64,000 bases of DNA from Mantamonas sphyraenae STR306. Taxonomy: Eukaryota > Protista > CRuMs. The stretch lies in NCBI GenBank assembly GCA_026936335.1, contig JAPMXV010000027.1:62001-126000 (forward strand). The letters are read 5' to 3'. Under the pieces are notes generated by a model. The model was not told where the DNA came from, did not search any database, and saw nothing but the letters and a program-made list of their open reading frames with translations. The translations under genes were made by a program, and so were the position numbers. Below, piece by piece: positions 23,453 to 63,556 of this stretch (position 1 is the stretch's first letter; every line of letters starts with the position of its first letter).

Positions 23453-25104
23453 ATGGAGGACGAGCCAAAGAAACCGCACAATGCGCCCAAGGCCGGCGCC
23501 AAGTTCTCCAAGAAACAGGCGAAAGTGGAGAAGCGGCGGGGTCGGGAAAAGGAGATGGCACGGAACCCAAAGGCGTTCATCTCGTACTCGGCGGTGAATG
23601 CGGCCAAGAACGTGCGCCGTCGCCAGGAACTGGACCAGAAGAAGCTGCATGCACAGGCAGTGAACAGGGAGGTGGAAGTGCCGCCTCCTGTGATGGTGGC
23701 CGTGGCTGGCCCGCCTGGGGTGAGTGTGTGCAGCGGGCGGGAGGCATGCAGGCGAGACGACGACGGACGCAGAATCCGTCTGGCATTTACGGCGAGCGAC
23801 GCTGACACGCAGGAGGGCTGTGGACACAATGGGACGCATGAACACACAGGTGGGCAAGAGCACTCTGATCCGTTCGCTGGTCAAGAACTACACACGACAG
23901 AACATCACGGACATCAAGGGCCCCATCACGGTTGTCAGCGGCAAGAACCGACGGCTGACGTTTTTCGAGTCGCCGTCCGACCTGAACGCAATGATGGACC
24001 TGGGAAAGGTTGCAGACGTGGTGTTGCTGATGGTGGATGCCAGCTACGGCTTTGAGATGGAGACGTTTGAGTTTCTGAACATTCTGCAGCAGCACGGTTT
24101 CCCACGCATCATGGGCGTGCTGACGCACCTGGACAAGTTTACGAGTGGCAAGACGCTGCGAAACACAAAGAAGAAGCTGAAGCACCGGTTCTGGACAGAG
24201 ATCTACGACGGTGCAAAGCTGTTTGAACTGAGCGGCCTTGTGAACGGCAAGTACCCAAAGTCGGAGGTGCACAACCTGGCCCGGTTCATCTCTGTGCTCA
24301 AGTTTCGTCCTCTGGTGTGGCGCAACACACATCCGTACGTGCTGTGCGACCGCGTGGAGGACATGACAAACCCAGAACTTGTGCGTACGCAACCGACGTG
24401 CGCACGCCGGGTCACGCTGTACGGATACACGCGCGGCTCGTACCTGAAGCCCGGCATGAAGGTGCACATTCCGGGAGTGGGGGACTTTTTCATGAAAAGT
24501 GTGACGGCGCTTGCAGACCCTTGTCCTCCGTCGAGCGCGAGCAAGGAGAAGCGCAAGAAGCTGAAGGACAAGGAGAAGCAGCTGTACGCGCCAATGAGCG
24601 ACGTGGGCGACATTGTGTACGACCAAGACGCAGTGTACATCAACTTGATGGACCACCAGGTGCACTTTTCGAACCTGAAGCAGGAGGACCAGCTGCTGGA
24701 CGAGCAGGGCAACCCGCTGGAAGAGGACCAGGTGATGGACGTCAACACCATCCAGGCAAACCCAGAAACGGCGGGCGTGCGCATGGTGAAGCAGATGCAG
24801 ACCAGCGAGCGCACGCTGAACGACATGCTGGAGGAGAGCGAGATGCAGCTGTTCACAGGCAGCAAGGCTCTCAAGAGCGGCGACTTTGCTGAGCTGGAGT
24901 CCGGTGTGGGTCAAGACGATGACAACGAGACTGAGGACAACCTCAAGCAGATGGTGGGCCAGTACAAGGCACGTGTGCGCGAGCAGCAGGAGGTGGATGG
25001 CGACGGGCGTGTCCGACGCCGCGCCGTGTTTGACATGGAGGACGAAGAGGAGGAGGACGACGAGATGGACGAAGAGGACCAACGCCACCATCCACGTGTA
25101 TTTG

Positions 25105-25135
<31 letters not shown>

Positions 25136-27293
25136 TGATGACGACGACGACGACGATATCGAGGAGATGGGCAACTGGAGGATGGAGGGCCGGGGCGACG
25201 ACGACGACGACGACGAAGGTGACGAAGATGATGAAGACGATGACAGTGACGATGGCAGCAACGGAGGCGAAGGCAGTTCGACGCGGTGGAAGCAAAAGAT
25301 GCTGAGCAGGGCTGTGGATGCACATGCGTTTGGGACACACCGGATGTCTTTGTGGAATCTGATCTATGGCAAAGAGGAGGACGAGGAGGGTGAGGAGGCG
25401 GGTGAGGGCGGTGAGGGTGACGACGACGACGGGGAGTTTTTCAGGCCTGTGGGCAAGCAGCGAGGAGGACGCGGAAGCGATGTGGGAGGGTCGTCGTCGT
25501 CTTCGTCGTCGTCGTCGTCGTCCTCGTCGTCGAGCAACAGCGAATCGGAATCCAAGGTGGCACGGCTGTTGCGGGACGCAGACGCAGTGGATTCGGCCAA
25601 GAGCATGTGCGCTTTGGAAGACTCGCAAGAGGAAAGCGAGCTGATGAGCATGGGTGACGATGAAGTGGACGAGTTGGTGGAGATGATGAGGGACCGCTTC
25701 TTCAAAGGAGCGTTTCTGGAGAGTGAGGCCGCAGAGAACGAGGAGCAGGCATTGGAGGCAGCGATCCACGACCGCAGTGAGGTCTATGGAGATTTCGAGG
25801 ACATGGAGGGTGGCGAGGCAGAAGGCGGTGAGGAAGAAGAGGACGGAGAAGAAGGGGAGGAAGACAGCGAGGCAGAAAACGATCGGATGGATGACATGCT
25901 GGAGGAGATGGAGTCAAGCGACAGGTTGAACAAGAAACGCGCAAAGAAGGCCGAGTTTATGAAGCAAGCAGAGGAGGAGTGGGACATGGACGACGACGAA
26001 TTCCTGGACAGCGTACGTGCGGCGACGGACAGCCAAAAGGCACTGAACAAGGAGATGGTGGAAGGGATGAGCGAAGAGGAGCGGGTTGCGTTTGAGGGCT
26101 TCCGTGCAGGTGTGTATGTGCGCATCGAGGTGGAGGGGATGCCGTGTGAGTTTGTGCAGAACCTGAACCCTCGGATGCCCATTATTGTGGGAGGGCTGCT
26201 GGCGAGTGAGGAGAAGATGGGCCTTGTGCAGGTGCGTCTCAAGCGCCACCGCTGGTTCAAGAAGATCCTCAAGACGAACGACCCAGTGATTGTGAGCCTG
26301 GGCTGGCGGCGGTTCCAGACGATGCCCATGTACAGCATGACGGATCACAACCTGCGCAACCGGTACCTGAAGTACACGCCGGAACACATGCACTGCGTGG
26401 CGACGTTCTTTGGGCCGATCACCCCACCAAACACAGGCATGGTGGCGTTTCAGAGCCTGAGCAACAAGCTGACGCACTTCCGCGTGAGTGCCACCGGGGT
26501 TGTTCTCGAGCTGGACAAGAGCTTCAAGATTGTGAAGAAGCTGAAGCTGGTAGGCTATCCGTACAAGATCTTCAAGAACACGGCATTTGTACGAGGGATG
26601 TTCAACTCGCCGCTGGAGGTGGCCAAGTTCCAGGGGGCGTCTGTGCGCACTGTGAGCGGCATTCGGGGCCAGATCAAGCGTGCGCTGAGCAATGACAACG
26701 GAAACTTCCGCGCCACGTTTGAGGACAAGCTGCTCATGAGCGACATTGTATTTCTCAAGGCCTGGCTTCCGGTGGAGCCGATGCGATACTTCAACCCGCT
26801 GACATCGCTTCTGGAATCCAGCGATCAGCGGTGGCGCTCCATGCGCACGGTGGCGCAGCTGCGTCTGGCAAACGACGTCCCGGTGCCAGTCAAGGCGGAC
26901 AGCGTGTACAAACCTGTGGAACGACCGCAAACGAGGCGATTCAACAAGCTGATGGTGCCACGTACGCTGGAAGAGTCGCTGCCGTTTGCAAGCAAGCCGA
27001 AGGAGGCAAAGAAACGGGCAAGCAACAAGCCCACGTTGGAGCAGCGGCGTGCTGTGGCGCGTGATCCGCACGAGAAGCGTGTGGCACGTGTGATGCACCA
27101 GCTGATGACCATCAAGAAGGAGAAGGATAGCAAGCGCAGCCTGAAGCGCAAGGCGTTTGAAAAGAAGGTGGGACAGCTCAAGGCCGAGGAGACAAAGCGA
27201 CGCGAGGCGTCTCTCAAGAAGGAAAAGGCCAAGGCAGCCAAGCTGAGGAGCCAAAAGGAGCGCAGGAGTGCCAAGAGGCAGCGTGTGGAGTAG
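23453..27293 (+). CDS. BMS1: Ribosome biogenesis GTPase BMS1; 2 exons (23453-23719, 23850-27293)
   Basis: RNPKAF; spliced P-loop [16 protein letters not shown]; [11 protein letters not shown]; [15 protein letters not shown]; [10 protein letters not shown]; [11 protein letters not shown]. Intron 23720-23849 (GTGAGT...CACAG). Confidence 0.95.
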
Positions 27294-35354: not shown

Positions 35355-38300
35355 TCACACCTCCACAGTCTCGCCTGCTGCCACTTTGCCACTTTCAAAC
35401 ACCATCTGTGCCACGCCGCCGCTTTCCAGGCCGACAAACACTGTTCCCACGCCACTCTCCCTGTCCAGCTCCACGGCCAACCCTTCCGCCAAAGCACCCC
35501 CGTCCACAAGTTGCTCGCACACGGCCTCCATGTTCCTGTCTGCGTCACGCACAATCAGCACAGGGCCGTTGTTCCCCTCCCCTGCCATCACCACGAAGCG
35601 GTTGTGCCACACCAGCGACCGCACGAGTAGTCCGGCTTCCACGCTGCACAACAGGCGTCCGTTGATCGAAAACACGTGCATCTTCAAATCCACCGCACTT
35701 GCCATGCACACACGCCCGTCCTCAGCCATCGCCAGGACGTCAACTTTGAGGTCGAGCGGATGCCGAATTGACCTGTGGAAGCGTCCGTTGCGCAGACCAA
35801 ACAGGATGCACGTCCCATCCGTGCTCCCGCTCGCCACCAAATCCTGCTCCTCACACACGCTCACGCACTGCACGCGGTCGTCGTGACCACGCAGCACATG
35901 CACAGGGGCCGCATCTCGACTTCCGCACAGTTCCTCCATTCGCCACACCATCACTGTCGTGTCTGCGCTTCCGCTGGCGAGCCACTCTCCGTTGCGGCTC
36001 ACATCGATGCACGTCACCTTGTCCCGGTGCCGCGTCACTGTGTGCTTCAGCATCGGCTCGTTTGCCACGCTGCTCACCTTCAGACCTCCGTCCCAGTGGC
36101 CACACGACACCAAGAATCGCCCGTCTCGGCTCACTCGGAAGCTGTCACGCATCGAATCCACCTCCGCATCACGTGCTATGCCCACAAAGTTGCTGCGCCG
36201 CTCCTTGTTCGAAAACAGTCCCCCCACGCTCTCCAACAGCACATTTGACTTTGGCATTGCACCACGTACCGTCACCTCCTGATTTGCCCACGTGTGCACC
36301 AATGTGCGTCCTTCACTATCCACTGTGCGCAGCGTCCCGTCACGCACGCTACACGCCTCAATCCCGCGGCCTTCCCCGCCTCCAATATCCACGTAGTACT
36401 GCTTCGCCGTGGCCGACCACTCCACTTCCACCGTCTGTACCACCTTTCGTTGCACGTGAGCCTTTGTGAACAGTTGGGACGGTGTCTGTCCGAAGCTGGC
36501 AATCTGCGCCTCGGTCGCCTCGCGCATCACCTCGTCCTCGATGCTCTCCACGTCGACGGCCCCCTCGTATGTCAGGTAGTAGAACAGGTTGTGTGCCTTG
36601 ACCGCTTCGCGTCCACGCTGCTTGTATCCAAACACAAGGTCCACCCAGGCGTGCAGTTGTCTGCTCACGTGTTCGCTCTCCAGCGCAAGCCGGTTCAGAC
36701 GCACAAACTCATCCGGCGACCCATTTGCCCACGGCGGCAACTGGACGTCGTCCACGTGCACTCCGTCCTGCGTATGGCCAAATTCCACACCGTTGATGTT
36801 GGTGAGAAACTCGGGCATGTAGAAAAACTCTGGGATCAGCTCCTTCACGTCGCTGTTGGACCGCATGCACGAATTCCACGTCTCGGCCACACTGAAGAAC
36901 ATGCGGTCCGGGTGGTCAAAAGTGCCGCCCTGCAAGTCGATCGCCAAACTCGTAAACGGCTCCAGGCGCAGCAAGTAGTGCAACACAATCCCCTCCGTGC
37001 TGTAGTGCGACCCGTAGTGGAAACGAGGCATCATCTCATCGTCTTCCATCTCGTTGAACCGCTCCAGAATGCCTTCCAGGCGTTCGGGGTTCAGCGCACC
37101 CACAGGCTTGCTGAGGTCGCGGTACACGTCCGGGTTGTCCAGATCCAACTCCTGCGACGTGTAGTCCGATAGAACCCATGGAAACACCGGGTACTGGCTC
37201 AGATCGTTGTATGTGCGCCCTGCAATCGTATTGATCTGCATCAGATACTCAAAGTTGGACATCTGGCCGCCCTGCCACTGCCGCGTGACGTCTTTGCGGT
37301 TCAGCAGCTTCCTCGGCGTGCCCAGGTACATCTCCACGCAGTTGGGCATGCTCTGCCACTGCAGCCTGTGGTAGAAAGCATTGCGGTCCGAGCGCGTATC
37401 AAAGGCAAACAACACACTCGTCTGCTTGGTGAGAAACAGTTCCATGGCGCAGTTCCGCAGCCTGTACTTGCGCGAATACACTGCTTCGATGCTTTCCATG
37501 CCCCACTGCTTGTCGCGTGCTTGTTTGATCACGCCTTCTTCGTTCTGTCCACCAGGCAGTCGGTCCACCACAAAGACAAGCGACACCGTGCCAGCGCGCG
37601 ACACAAGCTCAGCCTGCCCATGGATGACCATTCCCGCCTTGATCATCTTGCAAGGAAGCACAATCAGCTTCCTCTCCTCTCCTTGGCCATCCATAGGTTC
37701 TTGCAGCAGCAACAGGTCGTCTGCCTGAGCCTGCGAGATGCCACCCATCGACAGCCGAGGCGATGACGACGCCGATGAAGACGACGAGGACACCGACGAC
37801 GACGACGACGATGACGACGACGAACCAGGTGTCGGTGTCTCACTGCCTCCCATCTCTTCGTCGTCGTCTTCCTCCTCCACACTCACCGTACGCACGGTGA
37901 CGCTCGTGTTGAGCTGCAATTCGCCCAACAGCTGGCGCTGCTCCTCCGCTTGCTCCTCCAGCGACGGCCCTGCGCTCTGCAGAGGCTCAGCCTTGGTCAG
38001 AGCACACCCTTCATGGGCGCTCCCTTCGTAGTCCCGTTTGATCTTGCGGCGCATGCGGTACGGATCTTCTCCGCGGTGGATCTTGAAGAACACCCGCTGC
38101 TCCTGTTCACCCAACAGATCGCTGAACTGCGTACCATCGTCGTCTTCCCACTGCAAACGAGCGCTGCTCACATCCATATCCTCGGCCTCGCCCGCATCAC
38201 CTGCTGCTTGGCTCTTGCTGAACTGCTCGTTCACGCCGATGCGCGAGCTGACGAACGAGCCCCACGCGCCGCGTTTTCCGTACAACTCACGCACCATCGA

Positions 38301-41300
38301 CCTCCACGCACGCTGGTTTTGTCGAGCAGCGTTCTCTGACTGCAGTAGGGTGTGCGCTCTGCGGATCCCCTCGTCCACGCGCATCGTACCCAACACCTCC
38401 TGTGCCTCTTCCTGCATCTGCAGGGCATGTGGCTCCAGACCCAGTGCGCTGTTCAACGCCTGCTCGGTGCGCGATTCCAGCCTCGACAGCTCCTTCTTCA
38501 CGTTCCCCAGCAGCTTCGTCACCAGCTGGCTATGGTTGGCCAGCGCCAACTTGAGCAGTTCTGCGTTTTCGTGCACGTCCACGGCCATCTCGTGCAGCTG
38601 GTCAATCAGAAGCGGAAGGTGCTCGTTGCTCGACGAACCCATGGCCAGCAGCTGGTACAGCGTGAACAAACGCAGCTCGTCGCTCACCAGCTGCTCGCTG
38701 CGCAGCATGACGATGTTGTGCTCGCTCCGCTGCACGGGATCCAAGTGCACCCCCAATGTCGTGATGCACACGTTGCACATGCGCTGCACGTCCTCCAATT
38801 CGTTGCACTCGGCAATGCGCGTCACCAGCACACGCAGCACAATGCGCAGCAGGCCACCCTTGCGTCGCTTGGCCACGGGTGTCTGCAGCGCAGACCACGT
38901 CATTCCGTGCACCAGATTCTCAAAGTGCATCGGGTCAAACACGCGCACAAACACTTTGGCCACATTGGCATCTTTCCACTGGCCGTCTGCATCGCGATCC
39001 AGCCCATCGTCAGCCAGCACATTGCTCGTGCCCAGCATCACAAAATCCTCCTCGCCTGTGCTCTGCTCCCCGCTGCTGCTGCTGCTACTACCACTGCTAC
39101 TGCTACTGCTACTGCTGCTGTTGTTAACGGTACCTTCCACATGGCGTTGGCCCAGCACCACCGCGTCCCCTTCTTCATCTTCGGCGACACTGCCGTCCGC
39201 CGGAATGTTGTCCGCGTGTTGAGGCGCACCTCCACGCAGCTCACGAGGCATGTGAAACAAAAAGTCCTCCACAAACAGCCACAGGTACGTTAGGTTCTGC
39301 AGATACGTACGGCTGAGAGGCGACGTGTCGCTGCGTTTGATGTCTTCGCCCACGCTGACCAGCACGGCTTCCAGCACATCGCCCAGCACCATCAGTCCGT
39401 CGCCATGACCCTGTCCCTGCTTGGAGAGCGAGGCCACGTGGTGCAACGACGACTGGAACACATGCGTGCTGCTGTCGTCTTCTTCGTCGTCGCCCTCGAT
39501 CGCTGTTTCTACCAAGTCGGATTGCGTGCGCATGCTGTGCAGTGTCAGGATCTTCAGATTGTTCACAACCATCATGTACACGGGGTCGCTGCGCCGTGCC
39601 TCTGTGTCTGAACCACTTCCAGCGCTTTCGGCACAGCGCAACAGCCACAATTGCCACCCGCGTGACTCCATCAGCGCACTGCGGTTGCGCGCACGCGTGT
39701 TTAGCAACACGCTCAGATCCTGCAGCCATCGAGCACACATGTCTGCGTCTCTGCTGAACAGGACCAGTTGGAATAGTGTCTTGAGCAGGCCTGGAAACTC
39801 GATTGTTTGCTCGCCATCCAAGAAAATGTGCGAGCCGCCGTCCTCCTCTTCTCCTCCCTCCAGGGGCAGCTGGCCAAGCAGAAAGCCCAACAGCACTCCG
39901 TACACGCGGTCGGTCAGCGTAAACTGGGTGAGCAGCGCCGTCACGGCATCAAATCCCCCCTGCTGCTCAAACTTCTTCCGGATTCGCTTGTTGCTTGTGA
40001 TGTACGCCCCGAGGAGCCGCACGCCCATCATGCGCACCTCTTCTTCCGAATCACTCATCATGGCCAGCATGGCGTGCCAACCACTTTCCTTGCCCATGTA
40101 CGACAGCAGGTTCTTTGGCACGGGATCGGCTGTGAGAAGACCGAGCAACAGCGATACAACTTGTCTTACCTGCTCCACATCGCTGCAGTCAAACAGGAAA
40201 CGCATCAGAGCTTGCAGCTCATGCAACGCCACGTCCGAGCTCATCATGGCTCGCATCATCGCAAACAGCATGCTGCGGATTGGCTTCAGCGCCACCTGGG
40301 GATCCTCGGGCCTCCACACGTCCTGATTGCCTTGCTTCGTCTGTGCTCCCGGGTCGCGTGCGTCAAAGTAGAAAAACGCACGGCTGGCATCCAGGAGGCG
40401 CTGCACGCCCACCAGTTTGCGCACGCGCGTCACGTCCTCGTTCACAAGCTCCATTTGCATTTGCACAACTTCCTGCTGCACCACCAGAGGCGTGGTGCTC
40501 CAAAGCGCATGGTTGAACACCAGGTGCGTGTCGATGTCGTCCAGCAATGGCTTGTACGTGACCGCGGCGTGTCGGAGTTCAAACACCGCGACCACAATCT
40601 CCAGTGACAGCGACTGTGCGCTCAATTTGCACATGATGTGCTGCAGCAGATCAAACAGCTGCTGCTTGTGTGCCTCTTGCTTGTTCAGGTCATTGTGAAG
40701 CAGCTGCGTCAAGAGTGACAGGATGTACGCGTTCACCTGTGGGTTAAAGTGGCCCTCGTCATCCACATGGTCTGCAATCAGCGGCACCAGCACAGAGAGG
40801 CCACCCACAGAGTAAAACGCGTGCACCACGTCCATCACTCCCTCAACACGCGTGCCACCCAGCATGATCGCATTGGTCTGCGATTGCACCTTGCCGTTGG
40901 CTCCCGCAGACGACGAGGTGGAACTCGACGACGAAGATGATGAGCCACCGCCCACCATACTGTCCCCGTGGCCCTTGTTGTTCAAGCGTACGTCCAGTAG
41001 CTCGTGGCTGTCACCCGACACAGCCAAAGGGTCGTACACACACATCACCGACTTGCTGAGAGTGGAGTCCTCACCAGCAGAGTCTTCGATGCGTGAAAAA
41101 GCGCCGTGGTAGTCCGGGCCGATGGCATACAGCTGTTGCACTTGGGCCGCCTTGAGCTCTGTGTCAAAAAGCTGCACGGTGCCCATCTGGCCTGAAAACA
41201 CACCTGCGTCCAGGGCTGCGTTGTTTCCAACAAAGCATTGGGTGATACTGCTGCCAGAGGTCGGGTACTTGAGAGTGAGCTTGTCTGTTCCCACCTGTTC

Positions 41301-45400: not shown

Positions 45401-46226
45401 CGCTGGCAAGGGGATCAACATCAACATCAATGTGTACGGTGGCGGAGGCGTAGATGGAGGTGGAAGGGCGTCGCCACAGTCTGCGGTTGTGCAGGCAAGC
45501 AGCTCAAGCACGAGCAGCAGCACGAGCAGCACGAGTTCAGACATGCGAGGCAGTGTGAACCGCAGCACCAGCCTGAGGAGAGTGATTCCACAGCAACAGC
45601 AGCAACAGCAGCAACAACAGCAACAGCAAGGGAACAAGAACACCAAGGAATTGCAGGAACCGTTGGAGTCGCCCATTGCCAAGGTCAACACCCCGAGGCG
45701 AGAGATGATCAACGACAGCGAAATGGACGCGGGAGAACTGGTGGATGGGGAGGACGAACTGATCGCTCTGGACGACAAGACTTGCCAATTCTGTGGCGAG
45801 CATGATGAGGGCTTTGACAAGGACAAGCTGTATCTGCATTTTTGGAAGCGTTGCCCCATGCTCACGAGCTGTCAGCACTGTACACAGATTGTGGAAATTC
45901 CGTACCTGAACGAACACTACCTTTCGGAGTGTGAGAGCGGCACCAGCTTCCAGCAGTGCCCCAGGTGTCGCCAGGCCATCCCGTTGACCCAGTACGACCG
46001 ACACGTACGCACCAAGGTGTGCAAGCCAGCCAAGAGCGCGTCGGGCTTTGTGCGCTGTCCTTTGTGCGAGGAGGATTTGCCTCTGAACAGCAGTGACGAG
46101 CAGCAGATGTGGCGCAAGCATCTGATGACCAAGGACGGCTGTGCCAAGAACCCGCGAATCCAGGGCACCCAGCAGCCCAAGAAGCGCGAGAGCAGGCTCA
46201 AGCGGCCGACCAAGGTCAAGCGGTGA
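42408..46226 (+). CDS. CEP104: Centrosomal/ciliary tip protein CEP104 (jelly-roll, coiled coil, TOG domain, zinc-finger array); 2 exons (42408-42718, 42950-46226)
   Basis: TSEDDGHPVSEL, GWCS..FPQ, spliced FKRIG/FFHFGDNEKTEFQAREMKS, NEHNLFSQVGLVAIN, TOG SKNWKLRE, CQFCGEHD...LHFWKRCPMLTSC. Intron 42719-42949. Confidence 0.92.
43749..44162 (+). repeat. Three copies of a 27-aa coding repeat in CEP104 (43749-43829, 43911-43991, 44082-44162)
   Basis: HDEIPIGGGG[RK]NLVDYSAV[QED]AGSDDVP x3, with many synonymous differences between copies. Confidence 0.9.
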
Positions 46227-47295
46227 ACGCGAGGCACGGTGGGCCGTCGACAACACGTGGCGGCGGATTGTCCAAAAGATGGTACTTCTCTGTCATTCGG
46301 ATGTTGCGCCAGCGATTGAAGAGTGTTTGGACAGTGGTGATGATCCAGTAGATTGCGATCAGGGAGCCAGCGCCGTAGACGGTGATTTCCGTGAGCTTGA
46401 CCAGGCAGAAACAGGCAATGAATACAGTCACGGAGATTCCCATGTGAAGCCAGTGGGAACACAGGCCAATGACAGCCGAAGCAGCGGCCGCCATGAAGTG
46501 CGTTTTGGGTTGCAGGCGCCCCTCGACGTGGAGAATCCACATGCCAATCTGGCCTGCGATTTGGACAGCAAAGAGAATAAAGGTGAAAAACTCCCGATAC
46601 TGCGCTCCAGGGATGTAGGCGAGGCCAATGAGGCCACAGGCGATGGCGAGGACGATCAAGAGGGCGACAAACATCGAGGTGTAGGAGTCGAGGAAAACAA
46701 AGTAGCGGTCTGCCAGCACCGCCACCACCAAATACACAGAAAACTTGATGCCATACTCCCTGATGACATCTGCCCACGGGTCGAGGAACACCAGGAGGAC
46801 GAAAGAGAACAGGAACGGCCACCACGACCCGCCGTAGTTGAGGGCGTAGTACACAGACGCGTTGGCCACCATGCAATGCACGACTGAGCGCACAAGGTTG
46901 TTGATCTCAGAGGGGTACAGAGGAAGCGTTTTGTCAAAGGGAGACTCGTGCACAGAGATGGCCTCCTGGTGCGCCTTGGCAAGGCGGGCAAGATATTGTG
47001 GAATCGCCGCTTTGCCGCGCAGCCGTTTGTCAATGCCGACAGCTTCCAAATGAGGACTTTTCTGTGCTGCCACGCGTTGCATCTGCTTGAGGATGAGTTC
47101 CCAGGCAGGGCTGGCGTCCGTGATGCGGTGAAGGCGGTGACATGTGGCTCCCAGCTTGGCCAGCGAGCACGGGTGGTGTCGCAGGTGCATGCAAATGCGT
47201 GCCAGCACCTCGTCGGGAAGAAAAACCAGATGCGAGCCATCGAAATCCTGGTCCGACCACTCCTCCGACAGGGTGTGCTGCAGGGATGGCTTCAT
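46216..47295 (-). CDS. F-box + multi-pass membrane domain protein, paralogue 1
   Basis: EEWSDQD...LVFLPDEVLARICMHL...SLAKLGATCHRLHRI....AW, followed by about 7-8 hydrophobic segments. Confidence 0.8.
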   Translation of the reverse strand: MKPSLQHTLSEEWSDQDFDGSHLVFLPDEVLARICMHLRHHPCSLAKLGATCHRLHRITDASPAWELILKQMQRVAAQKSPHLEAVGIDKRLRGKAAIPQYLARLAKAHQEAISVHESPFDKTLPLYPSEINNLVRSVVHCMVANASVYYALNYGGSWWPFLFSFVLLVFLDPWADVIREYGIKFSVYLVVAVLADRYFVFLDSYTSMFVALLIVLAIACGLIGLAYIPGAQYREFFTFILFAVQIAGQIGMWILHVEGRLQPKTHFMAAAASAVIGLCSHWLHMGISVTVFIACFCLVKLTEITVYGAGSLIAIYWIITTVQTLFNRWRNIRMTEKYHLLDNPPPRVVDGPPCLAFTA

Positions 47296-47413
47296 TCCCG
47301 GTTTGTGTCTCGTGGCAGTCGGTTCTCCTGGTGCCGCTGGGGTGCATTCCAATTCTCCATGTTGGACCAGATATCTGGTCGTCATTGCCAAAAGAGCTCT
47401 TTTCATTTCCCCG

Positions 47414-48475
47414 CTAGAACACCATGCACGGACGCTCGTCCAGGAAGCGGGGGTCCGGGAAAATTTCATCCGCACGCTTGGTCTCCTTTGCCATGTCATC
47501 GAGACGTCCCCGCCCGTGCTTCATCACAGACCAGAACGCATAGACTCCGGGAGCAGAAACAAGCAGATGAGGCTGATTGAAACACAGGCTGATGAGCATG
47601 GCGGCAGAGGAGGCCACCAAAGCGATGAGGCCCAGCCACCACTTGCGCAGGTATGCTGCGCCCCCACACATGGTCTGGATCACCAGTGACAAGGGTCTCC
47701 ACACCAAGCCATACACAGTGAGGATCTCCAGGTAGAACGCCAGTGCAGAGACGCCGCAAATCACCAACCAATCCCACAAGTTGTCCAGCCTGTTGGTTTG
47801 CTTCCATTCCGCGCCCACAACGCCAAGTGCACCCAGCAGCGCAATGGTCACACTCACAAGCAGCATGTCCCTGCTGCCGAGCGACGGAAAGCTGCAATGG
47901 GCCAGGAGCGAGACGGCAACAAACGCCCCTGGAACGACAGTGAAGTCCCTGACAGAGACTCGAAACGGAGAGGTGGTAGCCAAGAGGATGGGAGAGGCGA
48001 CCAAGGGCCAATACGACCCGTTTTCTGTGCTGGCGAAATGGACGGCCCAGTTTGCGCCGAGAAAGTGGAGAAGGGAGTGCAGGAGCCACACCACATCCCT
48101 CGCAAAGAGAGGCAAGGGAACCGTGAACACATATTCGGGGCTCTGTACAGTGTACTGCTGTCGGAGGCGAGCACAGGCTTCGGCAATGGTGCGGCGCACC
48201 TGGTCTGCGCAAGGTTTGCCCCGCACTCGCGGCCGCTGGATGTGTTCACTCTGCAATTCCGGGTGCACGCGTGTCACATGCACATACTGCTCTGCAATGG
48301 CTTCCCATGCCTCACTTTCGTCCACGATGCGATGCAGACGCCGACAAGTGGCTCCCAAGCGGGCGAGCGAGATTGGATGCCGTTCCAAGTGGCTGCACAC
48401 ATTCAGCAGCACCTCTTCTGGCAGAAACACAAACGCAGACGTACGCTCGTCTTGCAATGCCCACTCGTTCTCCAT
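47414..48475 (-). CDS. F-box + multi-pass membrane domain protein, paralogue 2
   Basis: MENEWALQD...FVFLPEEVLLNVCSHL...SLARLGATCRRLHRIV...EAW. TM region starts HFLGANWAVHFASTENGSYWPL. Confidence 0.8.
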   Translation of the reverse strand: MENEWALQDERTSAFVFLPEEVLLNVCSHLERHPISLARLGATCRRLHRIVDESEAWEAIAEQYVHVTRVHPELQSEHIQRPRVRGKPCADQVRRTIAEACARLRQQYTVQSPEYVFTVPLPLFARDVVWLLHSLLHFLGANWAVHFASTENGSYWPLVASPILLATTSPFRVSVRDFTVVPGAFVAVSLLAHCSFPSLGSRDMLLVSVTIALLGALGVVGAEWKQTNRLDNLWDWLVICGVSALAFYLEILTVYGLVWRPLSLVIQTMCGGAAYLRKWWLGLIALVASSAAMLISLCFNQPHLLVSAPGVYAFWSVMKHGRGRLDDMAKETKRADEIFPDPRFLDERPCMVF

Positions 48476-48567
48476 GGGGTGTGTAAAACCCAGACTGGAC
48501 CCGAGTCGAGGGATGTTCTTTTGTTGTTGTTTCGCTGCCCCTGCTCTCGCATGCCACACACTCTCTC

Positions 48568-49707
48568 TCAGTCTCTCTTTTTGCGAAGCGACTTTGCACG
48601 CTCGGAACGTCGCTTGCGCAACCATTCGTGATTGTCTGTGGTGGCCTTGACGTAGGGCGGCTCGTCGGAAAACTCGGGCATGGGCAGGAGTTCCAGGAGC
48701 TTCTCTGCGTGTGCTTGCCACCTGCGCCGCCTCTCCCACCACCAGTGAGCCAAATAGTACGCAAAGACGGCATGAGGCACGGTGGTCAGAGCATACATGG
48801 CCTGGCCGGAGAAGTAGGTTGGCGAGAAACCAATGACAAAACCGAGTGCAGCAAAGGCCACCGACCACCATGTGATCCATAGGGCGGGAAGGAGCAGGGC
48901 CACAAACATCCATCGATGGGTGAAGGCACTGATGACATCGTAGGCCTCCAGCACCCACAGGAGCAGGTTGACGACAAAGAGCGCCGACACGGTGTGCCCC
49001 TCCTGCTTCTCCTTCCATTGATTGCCCTCTGCGTGCGCCAACTCGACAAAGAACCACAGAATGACTTGGAGCACAAAGAGTAGGAGCACCAGAGGCACGA
49101 CGTGAGCGGCCACGCGTGCGTAGGTGTCGAGCAACCAGCCCAGCAGGGCATAGACTGCCAGTGCGGATAGTTGGTTGACCCCAAGGGGCAATACGTCGTA
49201 CATGGGCACCAGGATGACCAGTGACGTCACCAGAGGCCACCAGCTGCCATCCCAGGCCGTGGCCCACCACACAGCCGCGTTCCCGGCCACAAAGTGCGCC
49301 AGCATCGTCCACGGCATGTGTTTGTGTTCGTTGCTCTGTATCACGTCAGGCACGCCGCCAGCCTGGTCCCTCAGTCCGTTCTTGCATCGCTCCCTGATTT
49401 CGTTGCGTTCCCGCTCCCGAAGCCGTCGCAACGCCTCCCGCCTCTCTTCCGCCCCTGCGCGCCCTCTGGTGCGCACCTGCAGTCCCGACGGATCCATACT
49501 CAATCCACATGTTTCGTAAGCCCGTGACACAGAGTCCCACGCTTCGCTCTGTGCAACCACACGCCGCAGCCGTCGGCAAGTTCCGCCGAATCGCTCCAAC
49601 GACATGGGCGAGCACCGCAGCTGCATGCACACCTGCTCCAGCACCTCGTCGGGTAGAAACACCAACGCACACGTCTCCTCGTCCTGCTCCGCCCAATCCT
49701 CCTCCAT
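48568..49707 (-). CDS. F-box + multi-pass membrane domain protein, paralogue 3
   Basis: MEEDWAEQD...LVFLPDEVLEQVCMQL...SLERFGGTCRRLRRVV...EAW. TM region starts HFVAGNAAVWWATAWDGSWWPL. Confidence 0.8.
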   Translation of the reverse strand: MEEDWAEQDEETCALVFLPDEVLEQVCMQLRCSPMSLERFGGTCRRLRRVVAQSEAWDSVSRAYETCGLSMDPSGLQVRTRGRAGAEERREALRRLRERERNEIRERCKNGLRDQAGGVPDVIQSNEHKHMPWTMLAHFVAGNAAVWWATAWDGSWWPLVTSLVILVPMYDVLPLGVNQLSALAVYALLGWLLDTYARVAAHVVPLVLLLFVLQVILWFFVELAHAEGNQWKEKQEGHTVSALFVVNLLLWVLEAYDVISAFTHRWMFVALLLPALWITWWSVAFAALGFVIGFSPTYFSGQAMYALTTVPHAVFAYYLAHWWWERRRRWQAHAEKLLELLPMPEFSDEPPYVKATTDNHEWLRKRRSERAKSLRKKRD

Positions 49708-49756
49708 CACACGGTGTTTGCAGCGGGGCGTTTGTTTCGGTTTGTAGTGCCACACA

Positions 49757-51430
49757 TCACGCGTCGTCCCCATTCAGCATCCTCTTCAACACTGCCTGCA
49801 ACACCACTCCGTTGGCCCTTCCGCCACTCTTGGCCATCACCTTGCCCACAAAGAAGCCAAACAGCTTGTGCTTGCCCTGCCTGTACTCTTGCAGCTTGTC
49901 GTTGTGGTCTGCCAGCACCTGCTCGCACCACACCTGCAACTCGCCCTCGTCACTCACTTGCTCCATGCCCATCTGCTTCACCAGCGCACGCACGTCTTCC
50001 ACCTTTCCTGCCTGCTGCCCGACGCACATTTCCTCCAACACCAACTTGACCTGCTTGCCACTGATCACCTCCTCCTCCCACAACGACACCAGCTGTGCCA
50101 TGCGTTTGCTGTCCACAGGCGACGCAGCCAAATCCAGCATTTCTGCGTTCAGATGTCCCATCAGCTCGCTCATGATCAGGTTGTTGACGCGTGTGGCGTC
50201 TGCCTCTGGCACCGCTGCCATCACCTCTTCAAAGTACTCGCTGGCATGGTTCTCGTTCACCAACACACGTGCGCTGTGTGTGCTCAGTCCATACTGCGCC
50301 TCCAGCCGTGCACGCCGTGCTTCGGGCAATTCCGGCAGCGTGGCACGCACCCGCTCCACCCACTCTGGGCCAATGTCCAGCGGAAGCAGATCCGGTTCGG
50401 GGAAGAATCGATAATCCGCCGCACTCTCCTTGTCACGCATGGGTGCGGTGACCATGCGCACGGCGTCGAACAGCAACGTCTGTTGGGCCACCTCGCCTCC
50501 TGCCTCCAACACCTCGATTTGTCGTGCACACTCGTACTCAATGGCCTTTTGCACGTGTCGGATGCTGTTCAGATTCTTGATTTCCGTCCGTGTTCCAAAC
50601 GGCGCCCCCGGCCGTCGCACACTCACGTTGACGTCGCAACGCAACGACCCCTTTTCCATGTCCCCGTCACAGGTTCCCACTGCACGCAACAGGGCCTGCA
50701 CACCCTTTACATACGCCCCTGCTTCTGCGGCTGTGCGCATGTCCGCTTCCGACACGAGTTCCATCAGCGCCATGCCCGCTCGGTTGAGATCAATAAATGT
50801 AAAGTGGTCGTGTTGCTCGTGCATGCTCTTGCCACTGTCCTGCTCCAGGCATACATGCGATACACGCACACGCTTCTCCCGCGTGTCTTGGGGTCGCTTG
50901 CCTGCCTGTACACTCACCTGCACCGCCCCGCCGAGCAACACGGGCGTGCGCGCCTGCGTGATCTGGTACCCCTGCGGCAGATCCACGTAAAAGTAGTGTT
51001 TCCGGTCAAAGTACGACCGTGGCGACACAGTGCTCCCCAGAGCCAGTCCCGTCTTGATGGCTGCCTCCACACACGCGCTATTGGCCACGGGCAGAGTGCC
51101 GGGGAGTGCCATGTCCACGCGCGACACTCGCGAGTTGGGCAGCGCCGCAAAGGCCGTCTCGGTGTCCGAGAACAGCTTGGAATGTGCCTTCACCTGTGCG
51201 TGGATTTCAATCCCAATCACCGGTTCCCACTCTCCCGTGCTTCCCGCCACCAAGTGTCCTCCGCGTGCATAGAACGCAGCCGTGTCCGCATGCTCGCTCC
51301 TCTCGTCCAGCTCCTGCGGCACCAGCGTGTGTGCTGCTGCTGTCTGGTCACACTCCCTGTGCCCTCTCGCCGTCCACTTCCACCTCGACACCGACGCCTG
51401 CCGTGCCACACCGCCCGACCGGCCAAACAT
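49757..51430 (-). CDS. GATB: Mitochondrial Glu-tRNA(Gln) amidotransferase subunit B (GatB/PET112)
   Basis: VIGIEIHAQ, DMALPGTLP, FDRKHYFYVDLPQGYQITQ, LEQDSGKS, LRCDVNVSV, RTEIKNLNS, DYRFFPEPDL. Arg-rich presequence. Confidence 0.95.
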   Translation of the reverse strand: MFGRSGGVARQASVSRWKWTARGHRECDQTAAAHTLVPQELDERSEHADTAAFYARGGHLVAGSTGEWEPVIGIEIHAQVKAHSKLFSDTETAFAALPNSRVSRVDMALPGTLPVANSACVEAAIKTGLALGSTVSPRSYFDRKHYFYVDLPQGYQITQARTPVLLGGAVQVSVQAGKRPQDTREKRVRVSHVCLEQDSGKSMHEQHDHFTFIDLNRAGMALMELVSEADMRTAAEAGAYVKGVQALLRAVGTCDGDMEKGSLRCDVNVSVRRPGAPFGTRTEIKNLNSIRHVQKAIEYECARQIEVLEAGGEVAQQTLLFDAVRMVTAPMRDKESAADYRFFPEPDLLPLDIGPEWVERVRATLPELPEARRARLEAQYGLSTHSARVLVNENHASEYFEEVMAAVPEADATRVNNLIMSELMGHLNAEMLDLAASPVDSKRMAQLVSLWEEEVISGKQVKLVLEEMCVGQQAGKVEDVRALVKQMGMEQVSDEGELQVWCEQVLADHNDKLQEYRQGKHKLFGFFVGKVMAKSGGRANGVVLQAVLKRMLNGDDA

Positions 51431-51471
51431 GGAGAGGTTGCTGTGTGCTGAGCAGCGCGGCAGCCCGACCA
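51431..51471. promoter_or_regulatory. 41-nt spacer between divergent GatB and Nup58-like start codons
   Basis: GatB has no other in-frame Met before its conserved domain. Nup58-like ATG is at 51472. Inferred from geometry only. Confidence 0.4.
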
Positions 51472-53175
51472 ATGACCTCACGCTTTGGCCGCTCTCGCAC
51501 CAGCGGCAGCTCGTCATCGCGCTCCAGCGGAAGCACGCGCTCGGGGTTTGGCAGCCGCAGCAGCAGGGACAAGGACAAGGATAAGGACAAGGACAAGGAC
51601 GACAGCGACGACGAGAAGAAGAGCAGCAGCACGCGCCGAGCCGGCGGCTTTGGCGCGCGCCGCTCCTCCCTGGGCAGGGACAAAGACAAGGACAAAGACA
51701 AGGATAAGGACGGCAGCGACGATGAAGGCGACAAGAAAAAGACGGGCAGCAGCCGGTGGGGATCGCGACGCTCTTCCCTAGGCTCCTCCTCCAGGAAGGA
51801 GAGCAGCGACGTCAAACGAGGCGTCACAAACCACAATGTGCAGATGACCACCAAGTATGAGGACCTACCCGACGACTGGAAGGATTCCATCCGCGACTTT
51901 GAGTAGGTTTGGTTGGTGGCCCCTCCTGCCTGTGGCCTGTGTGCAGTGCGTGGAGCTCCCAGCTTTGCTCCACGTCCGGCCTGATCCGCTCACCCACAGA
52001 CCACACCCGCGCGCACCCGCAGCTACGAGGTGTCCAAGTTTCGTATTGCCCTCGCAGACATTGACAAGGAGGAGACGACGCCCGAGAACGTGCCCACCAT
52101 GCTTATGGACGTCAGCAAGGACACCGACGCAAAGATGAAGGTGCGTCGTGCATTTTTTGGCGCCCAAGTTCGCCCCTCCTCACACGGACGCGCTGTATCC
52201 CCCTCCCCACACCACCACACTCACTCACTCCTTCACTCGTATGCCGGTGCATGCCATGGCTCTGTCCCCACACAGAAACTGACGTCCATCCTGAATGCCA
52301 TCACCATGGAACGCAGCGCGATCACCGCGCTGCACAAGGAAGTGACGCAGGAGCTGCGCAACGCAGACATTGTGCGACGGGAGCTGGAGTATTTGTCAAA
52401 CAGCAGCAGTCTGGCAGCCACGTACCTGTCGTCGAACCATCTGCCCACGCCGTACTTCTGGTCGCTGCTGGAGCGATTTGAGAAGCGGCTGGAGGAGTAT
52501 GCAAAGACGATTGCGGAGCTCAGCGAGCTGTTGGAGCCTGTGGAGCACGAGGCATTCACACCGCAAATGTTGGAGAAGATTGTGCACAACGAACACGAGT
52601 ACTTTCTGGCCACGGCATCACTGGTGGGTACAGTGCACGAGGAGGTGCAGAATGCCAAGGAGCACTTTATCAAGCATGTCAAACCCAAAGCAGGCTTCTT
52701 TGACGACGAAGAGCAACGCACACAGCGCTTGGAACAGTTCCGCACCAAACAAAAGGACATGCTGTCACAGGAGCGCTATCTGCAGAACCTGATCTTCCCC
52801 AACGGCACGCCGGCCGAGGAGCGCCAACGTGAGGAGGAGGAGAAGGCGTACAGCGGACGCAGCGGCAGTCGATGGGGGGCGTCGCGGTCGTCTGCAGGGG
52901 GCAGTCGCTTCGGCGCATCGCGTGCAAGTCGCTCGGGCAGCAGCAGCGGCAGCAGCGGCAGCGGCAGCCGCTTTGGACGCTCGCGGGCTGACGAGAAGAA
53001 GGATGAGGAGGAAGGAGGCAGCAGACGCAGTTCCCTCTCCAGGCGGACCACCCGTTCCAGCAGTGACTCCAGTGCAGGACGCCGCTCAAACCTGCGCGTC
53101 GACACGGGCAACCGCACGGGCACGTTCAGCCGAGGCTCCAGCCGTACCAGTGGCAGCAGCCGCTTTGGGCGTTGA
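51472..53175 (+). CDS. NUP58: Nucleoporin Nup58/Nup49-like central-channel protein with atypical charged FG/WG tails; 3 exons (51472-51902, 52023-52140, 52276-53175)
   Basis: Coiled-coil core TKYEDLPDDWKDSIRDF..., PTPYFWSLLERFEKRLEEYAKTIAEL, TPQMLEKIV....EYFLATASLVGTVHEEVQNAKEHF resembles the Nup58 pattern. FG motifs on both sides. Introns 51903-52022 and 52141-52275 are canonical. Confidence 0.7.
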
Positions 53176-53276
53176 ACCAACCACTGGCAGTCTTGTGGAG
53201 AATGGGAGTGTGGGCCAGCGCAGCGCGCGGTGCAATCCAAAACGAAAACAAAGCTCCCTTTCAACGATCGTCGCCT

Positions 53277-54410
53277 ATGCAGGACCGGGGTCCCCTGGAC
53301 GGTCTCCCACAAGAGGTGTTGCTCAGGGTGATGGCATATTTGCAACCAGAGGACCTTGCTAGACTCGGTGGCACGTGCCACAGGTTGCAGAACATCGTCC
53401 GCTCCCTGCCGTTGTGGGAGGAGGTGCACCACTCCGACATGTCCCTGGCAAATGTCGTCGGCGCTGACCCAGTGTTTGCGCAACTGGTACCGCCTGCAGA
53501 AGGCGATGGCAGCTGGTTTGGAGAGGTGTCGGGGCAACGCAGATTCATTGTTGCCTACTTCGACCAGATCCACGCACGAGCGCAGGAGGACGAGCAGAAA
53601 CTGCGACATGGGATGTGGTACCGCCGTATCATGGCCCTGTGTGCCCTGTGGCCGTTGTCAATGGCAGCGTGGACACTTGTGGAACGTTGGTGGGGCGCTC
53701 CACGCGCATACTGCATGGGCCTGGCCTGGTACAGCCTTGCCGTGCTCATGCTTACCACTCGTACGTGGGTGGTGAAACATGTGCTACCGCAGCCGAGCAT
53801 AACTTTCACGCGAGGCAGACACGCTCCGGCGTTGTTTCTCATCGTCATGCCGTTCCTCCTGGCGGCTCTTCTCCCTGCAGCCATGGCAGACGGCTGGATA
53901 CCCATTCCTTGGACGCCTGTCTTTATCCTCGTTGACATGGCTGTGCTGTACGTGACGCAAGACTGGCGTCCGCAGCACTTCCCCATTTCTCTTTTCAGAT
54001 CCATGCTCGTCATCAACACTGTGCCGTTGGGGCTTTGGATGGATGACATGGTACCTTTGCTACTTGTCCAGGGTTGTGTTGCGCTCTGCGTGATTGCGGC
54101 TGCGACTGTTCACTGGAAGATCTTGGTGGCTGAATCGATGCTCCTCGGAGCCCTCCTCACAGATCCGGAGCTTGCCATCGTCACTCCGGCTGCCGTGGCG
54201 CTCATTGCGGCTACTGTATACATCGGCGCCCTTGAAGTGGGCCATACAGCTTTGGTCCGCCAACACCAGCGGATTATTGCGTGCCACACACTCCCCCTCG
54301 AGCTGCGCCAGGCTCTGAGCTATCCTCCTTGGCTGGCTGCTCGACTACCCTCCCATCACATGCGTGCCTATGTCCGCTCTCTCCCGTCTGCGAGGCACGC
54401 TGCAGTGTGA
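53277..54410 (+). CDS. F-box + multi-pass membrane domain protein, divergent member 4
   Basis: PLDGLPQEVLLRVMAYLQPEDLARLGGTCHRLQNIV...PLW, followed by about 8 hydrophobic segments. Confidence 0.8.
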   Translation: MQDRGPLDGLPQEVLLRVMAYLQPEDLARLGGTCHRLQNIVRSLPLWEEVHHSDMSLANVVGADPVFAQLVPPAEGDGSWFGEVSGQRRFIVAYFDQIHARAQEDEQKLRHGMWYRRIMALCALWPLSMAAWTLVERWWGAPRAYCMGLAWYSLAVLMLTTRTWVVKHVLPQPSITFTRGRHAPALFLIVMPFLLAALLPAAMADGWIPIPWTPVFILVDMAVLYVTQDWRPQHFPISLFRSMLVINTVPLGLWMDDMVPLLLVQGCVALCVIAAATVHWKILVAESMLLGALLTDPELAIVTPAAVALIAATVYIGALEVGHTALVRQHQRIIACHTLPLELRQALSYPPWLAARLPSHHMRAYVRSLPSARHAAV

Positions 54411-61402: not shown

Positions 61403-63556
61403 ATGGCGTCGCTGCCGAAAGTGGACATCATTGTGGGAACCACGGACGGTGAGGAGGACGACGGCAACTGGGAGTTTGCCGGGTGGGGCGAAACGCGGCG
61501 AATGACAAGCGTGCTCGTGGACGAAGCAGGGGCCGTGCACTCTGTGAACAGTGAAAACGCAGACGAGGGTGCACGCACGCGCTCTCCGTCGGTGAGGTTG
61601 CATGCAGAGGGTGAGGAGCTTTCTGAAGATGGCACGGAGGAGAGCGAGGAGGGTGAAGAAGGAGAGGAGGGCGAAGAAGGCGCGGATGCGGCGCTGCTTG
61701 CCTCCCGCAAGCGCAAGAAGTATGGGGCTACAGGAAAGGATGGAAACGGCGATGATGATGACAGTGAGCATTCGGGAGCCAAGGCGCAATCCCACCATCC
61801 GAAACTGGGCCGGTGGAAGAGCACAAGCATCCCGGGCAACGACATCACAAGCAGCTGCTTCTACGCCGCCGCTCTGTGCACCGTCGACGCAGGCACGTTC
61901 AGCTTTGTGTCCCTGTTGGTGGTGGCGGGTCTGCTGTACCTCTTTCGAGACATCTACGCAGAGGTCGGCTCCGCTGTGCGTCTCAACGGCGGCGTGTACA
62001 CACTGATGCTGAACACGACCACCAAAAAGACGGCAGCAGTGGCAGCCAGCATGTGTCTGCTGTCCTACATCTGCACGGCTGTGATTTCGGCAAATTCGTC
62101 CGCGCACTACCTGGCCACATTGGCCGACGTCAACGTAACCTGGACGACCATCATCATCCTGGGCATCTTTGCCCTGCTGACTCTGATTGGCATTTCCGAG
62201 AGTGCCACTGTGGCCCTGGTGATCTTTGGCTTCCATATTTTGTCGCTGGTGGTGCTGGCTGTGGCCTGCGTGGTGCACATTGCACAGGACCCGGCCCAAT
62301 TCATGGCCAACTGGGATCCGCCCGTCCTGGGCACTTCTCTGCGTTCCACAAATGTGTTCAACGCCATTTTCTTTGGCTTCACGGCGGGCGTGCTGGGTGT
62401 GAGCGGTTTCGAGAGCGCAAGCAACCTGATCGAGTCGATGAAGCGCGATGAGAAGGAGGACGTGTACCCGTTCTCCCTCAACACAATGTGGATCTTGGTC
62501 AGCGTGATCAACCCGCTGCTGGCTTTCCTGTCCATGGGCATGGCGTCGGTGGAAGACATCGCCACAGAGTACCAGAATTCCTTGCTCAGCCGCATGGCGT
62601 TGGTGGCCGGCGGCCAATGGCTGCAGTTTGTGATTGTGTTGGACGCCACCGTGGTGCTTTCTGGCTCCGTGCTGACGGCTTACGTGGGTGTGGGCGGTCT
62701 GCTGGAACGCATGACGCTCGACCGCATCATGCCACCCGTGTTTCTGCATCGCAACCGCCGCGGAGCAAACTACGTCATCATCCTGTCCTTCTTTGCGCTG
62801 ACGACCACCCTGTACTTTATGGTCAACGGAGAGACGGAGACGCTGGCGGGCGTGTACTCGGTTAGCTTCCTTGGTGTGATGCTCCTCTTTGCCGTGGGCA
62901 ACCTGGTGCTCAAGTTCAAGCGCAGCCGTCTGCCGCGCAATGTCAAGGCTCATCCACTGGCCTGTGTGGTGGCCGCCCTGATGGTCATGTCCGCCGTGGT
63001 TGGCATCATTGTCAACAAGCCGACCATCCTGATTCCGTTCACCATCCTGTGGTTCGCCTCCCTGCTTGTGATCTTTGTCATGTTGCTGCGCTACCGCATC
63101 CTCAAGTACATGCTGCACATGCTGCGTGACGTGCTCAAGAACAAGCCCAAGAAGTATCGCAACGTCATCGTTATGGTCAAGCGTTGGCTCAAGAACATCA
63201 ACGAGCAGAAAGTCATTTTTTTCGCCAAGGATGACGACCTACAGCTCATCAACAAGGCCATCCTGTATGTGCGCGAGAACGAACTCACCGAGTGCATGGA
63301 GATTGTTCACGTCTACGACAAAGAAGAGAACCTGCCCCCCATGCTGCGCGAGAACGTGCGTCTGCTTGACAAGTGCTATCCCAAGATCCGTGTGGACCTG
63401 GTTCTCGTCCAGGGCCGCTTCTCGCCCGAGCTCACCGACGCCATCTCCCGGAAGCTCGACGTGCCCAAGAACTTTATGTTTATGGCCTGTCCCGACTTTC
63501 AGCGCGCCAAGTATGATTTGAGTGCGTTTGGCGGCCTGAGAGTGATTACAGCATGA
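61403..63556 (+). CDS. APC-superfamily amino-acid permease with a C-terminal soluble (USP-like) domain
   Basis: GNDITSSCFY, YAEVGSAVRLNGGVY, LGVSGFESASN, LSGSVLTAYVG, LAGVYSVSFLGVM, INKAILYVRENE; about 12 TM helices. Confidence 0.88.
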   Translation: MASLPKVDIIVGTTDGEEDDGNWEFAGWGETRRMTSVLVDEAGAVHSVNSENADEGARTRSPSVRLHAEGEELSEDGTEESEEGEEGEEGEEGADAALLASRKRKKYGATGKDGNGDDDDSEHSGAKAQSHHPKLGRWKSTSIPGNDITSSCFYAAALCTVDAGTFSFVSLLVVAGLLYLFRDIYAEVGSAVRLNGGVYTLMLNTTTKKTAAVAASMCLLSYICTAVISANSSAHYLATLADVNVTWTTIIILGIFALLTLIGISESATVALVIFGFHILSLVVLAVACVVHIAQDPAQFMANWDPPVLGTSLRSTNVFNAIFFGFTAGVLGVSGFESASNLIESMKRDEKEDVYPFSLNTMWILVSVINPLLAFLSMGMASVEDIATEYQNSLLSRMALVAGGQWLQFVIVLDATVVLSGSVLTAYVGVGGLLERMTLDRIMPPVFLHRNRRGANYVIILSFFALTTTLYFMVNGETETLAGVYSVSFLGVMLLFAVGNLVLKFKRSRLPRNVKAHPLACVVAALMVMSAVVGIIVNKPTILIPFTILWFASLLVIFVMLLRYRILKYMLHMLRDVLKNKPKKYRNVIVMVKRWLKNINEQKVIFFAKDDDLQLINKAILYVRENELTECMEIVHVYDKEENLPPMLRENVRLLDKCYPKIRVDLVLVQGRFSPELTDAISRKLDVPKNFMFMACPDFQRAKYDLSAFGGLRVITA

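Follow-up and report, generated by a model that had tools for sequence, protein, structure and literature searches.

The window analysed here, a 64,000-nucleotide stretch covering positions 62001–126000 of contig C27 in the genome of Mantamonas sphyraenae, contains four genes, henceforth referred to as W1 to W4, each encoding an N-terminal F-box followed by a strongly hydrophobic, putatively membrane-spanning region. Mantamonas is a deep-branching eukaryote of the CRuMs group, placed near the base of Amorphea. The published assembly (GCA_026936335.1) has 25.06 Mb in 78 primary contigs with 59.19% GC (PMC10492846); the sequence used here contained 25,061,354 bases in 78 contigs at ~59% GC. F-box and ubiquitin are unmentioned in the genome paper, and the protein predictions were deposited at Figshare (PMC10492846), which probably accounts for the absence of the window's own proteins from protein libraries. 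An earlier note on this DNA, made from its letters alone, had described three tandem intronless genes with a fourth 3.5 kb away, encoding one family of multi-pass membrane F-box proteins. The open reading frames (ORFs) were found in this arrangement, with W1 to W3 on the minus strand, in the order GatB, W3, W2, W1 with spacers of 49, 92 and 118 bp, respectively, and W4 on the plus strand (Table 1).

Start codons were chosen from the paralogue alignment, Met positions and GC content by codon position. The longer ORFs present at these loci are artefacts that result from read-through in GC-rich DNA. The longer W1 ORF reaches 47499, and the stretch 47296–47499 lacks the coding pattern of GC at third codon positions (GC3): the 68 codons upstream of the Met at 47295 have a GC3 of 0.52 and a second-position GC (GC2) of 0.65, versus 0.72 and 0.40 inside W1, and are probably non-coding. 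A 632-aa GTG-initiated ORF of W2, reaching 49312 and overlapping W3 in another frame, was rejected as a read-through artefact, and an alternative W3 ATG at 49773 would give a 17-bp overlap with the end of GatB. Within the selected frames, GC3 was 0.67–0.74 and GC2 was 0.40–0.45, matching CEP104, GatB and P450, which are bona fide genes nearby; W1 to W4 are therefore coding, as opposed to ORFs that arise by chance in GC-rich sequence. Sequencing runs X1–X4 represent one strain and displayed 0 differences among them. A 1-base insertion in the 3′ end of W3 (window 48592), carried by one contig of run X4 (depth 5.6) and absent from the three other runs, is probably an assembly error.

Table 1 Features of the four F-box genes, in window coordinates.
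Feature	Position	Strand	Basis
W1 gene, 359 aa	46216–47295 (including stop)	minus	ORF, Met positions, codon-position GC
W1 F-box	47101–47223	minus	PF12937, 26.6 bits (hmmscan); 30.2 bits in six-frame genome search, over cut-off
W1 polytopic helical region (predicted), ~residues 128–322	46330–46914	minus	Hydropathy; AlphaFold2 helices at 128–342
W1 C-terminal proline motif PPPRVVDGPPC, common to W2 and W3	46234–46266	minus	Alignment; P346 and P353 invariant
W2 gene, 353 aa, starts MENEW	47414–48475	minus	ORF, Met positions, paralogue alignment
W2 F-box	48296–48427	minus	PF12937, 37.9 bits; PF00646, 21.8 bits
W2 polytopic helical region (predicted)	47579–48130	minus	Hydropathy
W3 gene, 379 aa, starts MEEDW	48568–49707	minus	ORF, alignment, codon-position GC
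W3 F-box	49525–49659	minus	PF12937, 22.9 bits (hmmscan); 26.5 bits in six-frame genome search, over cut-off
W3 polytopic helical region (predicted)	48832–49305	minus	Hydropathy
W4 gene, 377 aa	53277–54410	plus	ORF, Met positions, F-box match; alternative ATG 53202
W4 F-box	53298–53429	plus	PF12937, 41.0 bits; PF00646, 34.0 bits
W4 polytopic helical region (predicted), with ADGW.P.PW and LWMDD motifs	53628–54224	plus	Hydropathy, motif comparison

The N-terminal F-box proposed for all four proteins was confirmed by profile searches. The PF12937 cut-off is 24.3 bits; W3 falls below it by hmmscan, and all four proteins exceed it in the six-frame genome search. A profile of the W family also aligns end to end with the F-box of Skp2 in the Skp1–Skp2 structure 1FS1. 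As the earlier note had stated, no leucine-rich repeat (LRR), WD40 or Kelch domain was matched in a Pfam scan of W1 to W4 at E ≤ 1, and no RING family (RING or RING-CH) was among the matches at this threshold.

In each protein the F-box is followed by a linker of 60–90 residues and then by a region, all-helical as modelled, with 4–6 strongly hydrophobic segments. Transmembrane potential was assessed as the 19-residue Kyte-Doolittle mean with a membrane threshold of 1.6. Each of W1 to W4 contains 4–5 segments above this value, with a peak of 2.9, while the identical test gave 0 such segments in 21 of this genome's 22 F-box ORFs that are not of the membrane type. The multi-pass character proposed earlier is thereby borne out, with multiple windows at means of 2.0–2.9 in each protein. 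The proposed count of 7–8 transmembrane segments is plausible from weak AlphaFold2 models, which are all-helical with ~8 long helices after the linker (W1, 4-row alignment; W4, 3-row alignment), but with 4–5 strong segments the number is not fixed. Protein identity among the paralogues is 25–32%, and among the four membrane regions it is 21–25%, so that these regions appear to be fast-evolving. The suggestion in the earlier note that tandem diversification may follow variable targets (pathogen, prey or non-self) is neither strengthened nor weakened by these comparisons, the paralogues lying too far apart for dN/dS and the sequencing runs being identical.

The three sequence motifs noted earlier for W1 to W3 were all present in the alignment: E.W..QD before the F-box, H[CF]...N..V..A....GS[WY]WP[FL], and a C-terminal P.P...D..P. 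The acidic first motif and the C-terminal one are candidate regulatory or docking sites. The WWP motif was considered as a family hallmark and was rejected, as it is not shared. W1 to W3 are a young tandem triplet, and a profile built from the four W proteins gave full-length matches in the genome only to W1 to W4 themselves. Word-indexed homologue searches with W2, W4 and a further polytopic F-box protein of this genome, C32, returned no match at E ≤ 0.001. An exhaustive hmmsearch of 1.84 billion representative proteins, using a profile of the linker and transmembrane region that mixed W4 with W1 to W3 (later found to be non-alignable), returned only two matches, broken into 16 and 5 short stretches. 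One of them belongs to no Pfam family, and the second has only a borderline match to an unrelated family. On these grounds both were rejected as homologues and treated as compositional. Because CRuMs are thinly sampled, this blank shows fast divergence or lineage restriction and not deep absence.

W1 to W4 are part of a wider class of polytopic F-box proteins that has expanded in this lineage. A six-frame search of the genome identified ~79 F-box matches, and 35 F-box ORFs from this set were examined with 1.5-kb flanks. Thirteen of the 35 are polytopic, with 3–8 hydrophobic segments after the F-box: W1 to W4, C22, C32, C9, C56, C55, C68, C75a, C75b and C27b. Some members carry a recognisable Tmemb_185A domain (PF10269). 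A genome-wide scan for this domain identified ~9 ORFs, none of them inside the window, and in C22 (818 aa), C32 (579 aa) and C9 (622 aa) the F-box and Tmemb_185A are both above Pfam cut-offs. In C38, C72 and C36, Tmemb_185A occurs with no F-box in the same ORF. A unit of the form DG......W...F(V/I)P...W is repeated at helix starts in C22, C56 and C38. BLAST comparison of the membrane regions resolved a Tmemb_185A-like group (C22, C32, C56, C38, C36 and C72), the C75 pair and W1 to W3.

The F-boxes of this class also resemble one another. The core variant TC[RHK] is present in 11 of the 13 membrane-type F-boxes versus 4 of the 22 others (Fisher p = 2e-4, a value inflated by paralogy), and the soluble F-boxes mostly have a canonical VC+xW core instead. 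An F-box tree placed 10 of the 13 membrane-type F-boxes, including W1 to W4, C22 and C32, in one clade (support 89/74). From these sequence comparisons, the membrane F-box genes could plausibly share one origin. The genome also encodes the core of the Skp1–Cul1–F-box (SCF) ubiquitin ligase, namely 2 genes for Skp1 as well as at least 5 cullin loci. The Skp1 genes are located 4.5 kb apart on contig C35 (33786–33926 and 38361–38504, both on the plus strand) and score 104.9 and 53.5 bits, one being clearly divergent. The divergent Skp1 could be a candidate partner of the membrane-type TC[RHK]xL F-boxes.

Several other loci are of related interest. On contig C51 (21683–26505, minus strand), F-box matches at 24645 and 26407 alternate with Tmemb_185A matches at 23774 and 25079–25573 in separate ORFs, probably representing two more tandem F-box–Tmemb_185A genes split by an intron or frameshift. 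On contig C75, three F-box genes form a second tandem array (38046–41266, plus strand; L047, L014 and L052). Two of them (530 and 517 aa) have 5–6 hydrophobic segments; the third ORF, of 235 aa, has a nearly identical F-box and no membrane region inside the ORF, and this gene is either truncated or continues past an intron. A 59-bit F-box with the membrane-type core TCRRL on contig C33 (44279–44407, plus strand; L026) lies in an ORF of only 120 aa, and the gene may continue past an intron, possibly into a membrane domain. Three tandem ORFs of 999–1038 aa on contig C4 (175126–181659, plus strand; L028, L032 and L038) have the F-box near residue 501 and 0 hydrophobic segments.

The inclusion of W4 in one four-gene family, as proposed in the earlier note, was upheld for the architecture, which W4 has in common with the triplet, but not for the membrane region, where nothing beyond the F-box was detectably homologous to W1 to W3 by BLAST, iterative hidden Markov model (HMM) search or hhalign. 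The F-box of W4 groups instead with those of C27b and C68 (support 81/90), and the membrane regions of these three proteins have the motifs ADGW.P.PW and LWMD[DG] in common. By hhalign, the W4/C68/C27b group matched the Tmemb_185A group at E = 0.0048 versus 0.026 for the reversed control, a weak signal, and C27b alone matched it at E = 3.3e-4 versus 0.053. In the alignment, the W4-group motif DGW.P.PWT..F is in register with C22 and falls on the DG......W...FVP unit that recurs in the Tmemb_185A-type proteins. To judge by these alignments, the W4 subfamily may be a divergent Tmemb_185A type. C27b is an 872-aa ORF located ~3 kb past the end of the window (contig C27, 128987–131603, minus strand; L034:505-3120:-), with its F-box at residue 496 followed by 5 hydrophobic segments; five membrane F-box genes therefore lie within 23 kb.

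No comparable link was obtained for W1 to W3. Their membrane regions matched Tmemb_185A-type domains by hhalign at E = 0.18–0.33, no better than reversed controls, and hhalign of the W groups against the C75 and C55 groups was likewise not significant with reversed controls. In an iterative HMM search with decoys the groups closed without joining, and W1 to W3 were not recruited to Tmemb_185A. Their own unit, [DGN]GS[WY]WP[LF], is out of register with the repeated Tmemb_185A unit. The PF10269 model itself had no match in W1 to W4 at E ≤ 1; this means little in this lineage, because C56, which is clearly related to C22 and C32 (BLAST 1e-16), was also missed at that threshold.

Comparable proteins exist outside Mantamonas. 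A first ESM Atlas look-up returned an F-box cluster with Tmemb_185A (PF10269) in 23% of its members, and a second look-up with C32 returned two F-box + Tmemb_185A clusters with scores of 0.93 and 0.91. One of these two comprises 56 members and is most frequent in Evosea (Amoebozoa). Like W1 to W4, F-box + Tmemb_185A proteins have an N-terminal F-box, a linker (60–100 residues) and a polytopic helical domain with no LRR, WD40 or Kelch domain, and they share with the W genes the TC[RHK]xL core variant and the F-box clade. Unlike them, W1 to W4 have no PF10269 match, W1 to W3 have no profile link and the link of the W4 group is weak. In plants, Tmemb_185A is fused to a C3HC4 RING E3 ubiquitin ligase in AtPPRT1 (AT1G68820; PMC6358930; also PMC8169666), and according to the discussion in that paper a form truncated of its transmembrane domains had no E3 activity (PMC6358930). 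AtPPRT1 thus also combines a polytopic membrane domain with a ubiquitin-ligase module in one protein, but the domain order is reversed: its RING is C-terminal and binds the ubiquitin-conjugating enzyme (E2) directly, whereas the F-box of the W proteins is N-terminal and would need Skp1 and Cul1. The likeness to W1 to W3 is so far one of architecture.

The literature searched contained no relevant paper on polytopic or transmembrane F-box proteins or on TMEM185 combined with an F-box. The system was called apparently undescribed in the earlier note, and this holds only in part. The architecture already exists in databases, in C22, C32 and C9 and in the two Atlas clusters, and an annotated family of the kind that the note had set against its own proposal is partly present, as F-box with PF10269 and as RING with Tmemb_185A in plants; on the other side, no paper was found and the W1–W3 domain matches no family. 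The triplet and W4 are lineage-specific variants of a class that is present in databases and unstudied in the searched literature.

The surroundings of the four genes are densely packed. Between the stop of GatB and the start of W3 lie only 49 bp (window 49708–49756), an extreme degree of gene packing, and W1 and CEP104, which converge, have 11 bp of coding sequence in common at their 3′ ends, where the stop codons lie (window 46216–46226). The CEP104 ORF (window 42999) begins in the middle of CEP104_N, with profile positions 81–120 at residues 1–40; CEP104 therefore has at least one upstream exon and hence an intron, unlike the F-box genes.

In textbook accounts, SCF receptors are soluble and membrane substrates mostly fall to transmembrane RING ligases, among them Hrd1, Doa10/MARCH6 and the MARCH family of endoplasmic-reticulum-associated degradation and the endomembranes. 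W1 to W4 are, on balance, probably membrane-resident SCF substrate receptors. Because no signal peptide lies ahead of the N-terminal F-box, this domain is expected to face the cytosol, where it would dock on Skp1 and bring the Cul1–Rbx1 ligase to the membrane. A topology with both termini inside would fit the K/R-rich C-terminal tails and the length of the N-terminal domain (~130 residues), which is devoid of a signal peptide. Anchoring of the complex and choice of the target would fall to the polytopic C-terminal domain, which stands in for the LRR, WD40 and Kelch domains of soluble F-box proteins; the target would probably be a membrane protein, encountered in the bilayer or next to it. The job is likely to be analogous to that of Hrd1, Doa10 and MARCH, with a membrane-embedded ligase part meeting membrane substrates; unlike those ligases, W1 to W4 have no RING and no sequence relationship to them, and an SCF-type assembly is modular. 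Other F-box proteins are known to act at membranes, including FBXL2 (by geranylgeranylation), Fbw7-beta (by a transmembrane segment) and yeast Mdm30 and Mfb1 (at mitochondria). These combine a lipid anchor or one helix with an LRR or WD40 domain, whereas W1 to W4 are predicted to be polytopic and have no soluble binding domain.

Several observations weigh against the assignment of W1 to W4 as membrane-resident receptors. The family F-box has Leu at the canonical Trp of “CKxW” together with a two-residue insertion, and these changes could alter Skp1 binding. A positive-inside count on W1 to W4 did not settle the orientation, as the loops are short and charge-poor. Confidence in the AlphaFold2 models was low (predicted local distance difference test scores of 47.8 for W1 and 45.5 for W4), precluding a fold assignment, and an ESM Atlas fold search with the low-confidence W1 model gave TM-scores ≤ 0.30 by query, which are meaningless. 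The W1–W3 membrane domain has no detectable relatives in the 1.84 billion representatives and offers no hints of a target. The F-box clade that unites most membrane-type genes also contains a classical F-box–WD40 protein (L043), and the tree was built from 63 alignment columns only. Additionally, none of the sequencing runs found is RNA.

A role outside the SCF is unlikely but has some points in its favour. F-box/Skp1 assemblies that operate without a cullin are known from yeast, in Rcy1 and the RAVE complex, and W1 to W4 might similarly bind Skp1 and serve membrane trafficking or organelle dynamics instead of ubiquitylation. The non-canonical F-box core, the divergent second Skp1 and the membrane residence of the proteins would all suit such a role. 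Against it, the F-box scores are normal for the domain and cullins are present in the genome. A similarly small probability is attached to the F-box being a turnover handle, with the membrane domain as the functional part (a transporter, channel, enzyme or TMEM185-like scaffold) whose own abundance is tied to the SCF through autoubiquitylation. Autoubiquitylation is common among F-box proteins, and the Tmemb_185A ORFs that lack an F-box indicate that the membrane domain can stand alone. Fusions of polytopic domains with E3 modules recur, however, with RING in plants and with the F-box here and in Amoebozoa, which is a better fit to ligase targeting, and the function of TMEM185 itself is uncharacterised.

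Decay of at least one of the four genes into a duplicate without function is improbable: the fast evolution of the membrane regions and the lack of RNA runs would allow it, but the four frames are all open and show GC3 of the coding type, the F-boxes are intact and motifs are kept at both ends of W1 to W3. That the hydrophobic region forms a soluble helical bundle is very unlikely, although hydrophobicity is only moderate in several predicted helices and the transmembrane number is not exact, because the hydropathy test splits the two kinds of F-box ORF cleanly and several windows per protein lie far above its threshold.

Beyond the reading of W1 to W4 as SCF receptors in the membrane, a broader proposal is put forward only tentatively and is more doubtful than that reading. 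Mantamonas may possess a large SCF-based system of membrane-protein surveillance or regulation, in which polytopic F-box receptors of several non-alignable subfamilies take the role of transmembrane RING ligases; the W1–W3 domain would then be a new fold without relatives outside the lineage, diversifying in tandem after different membrane targets.

Taken alone, W1 to W4 are a lineage-specific offshoot of moderate interest. The more notable result is the genome-wide class, which makes up about a third of the sampled F-box genes and in which many F-box proteins have a polytopic region as their only other domain. A like theme occurs elsewhere, as F-box with Tmemb_185A in Amoebozoa and as RING with Tmemb_185A in plants, and gives a hint that the uncharacterised TMEM185 family may serve as an E3-ligase-targeting membrane module. 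The fusions in Mantamonas, Amoebozoa and plants suggest an old, overlooked route of cullin-RING ligases into the membrane.

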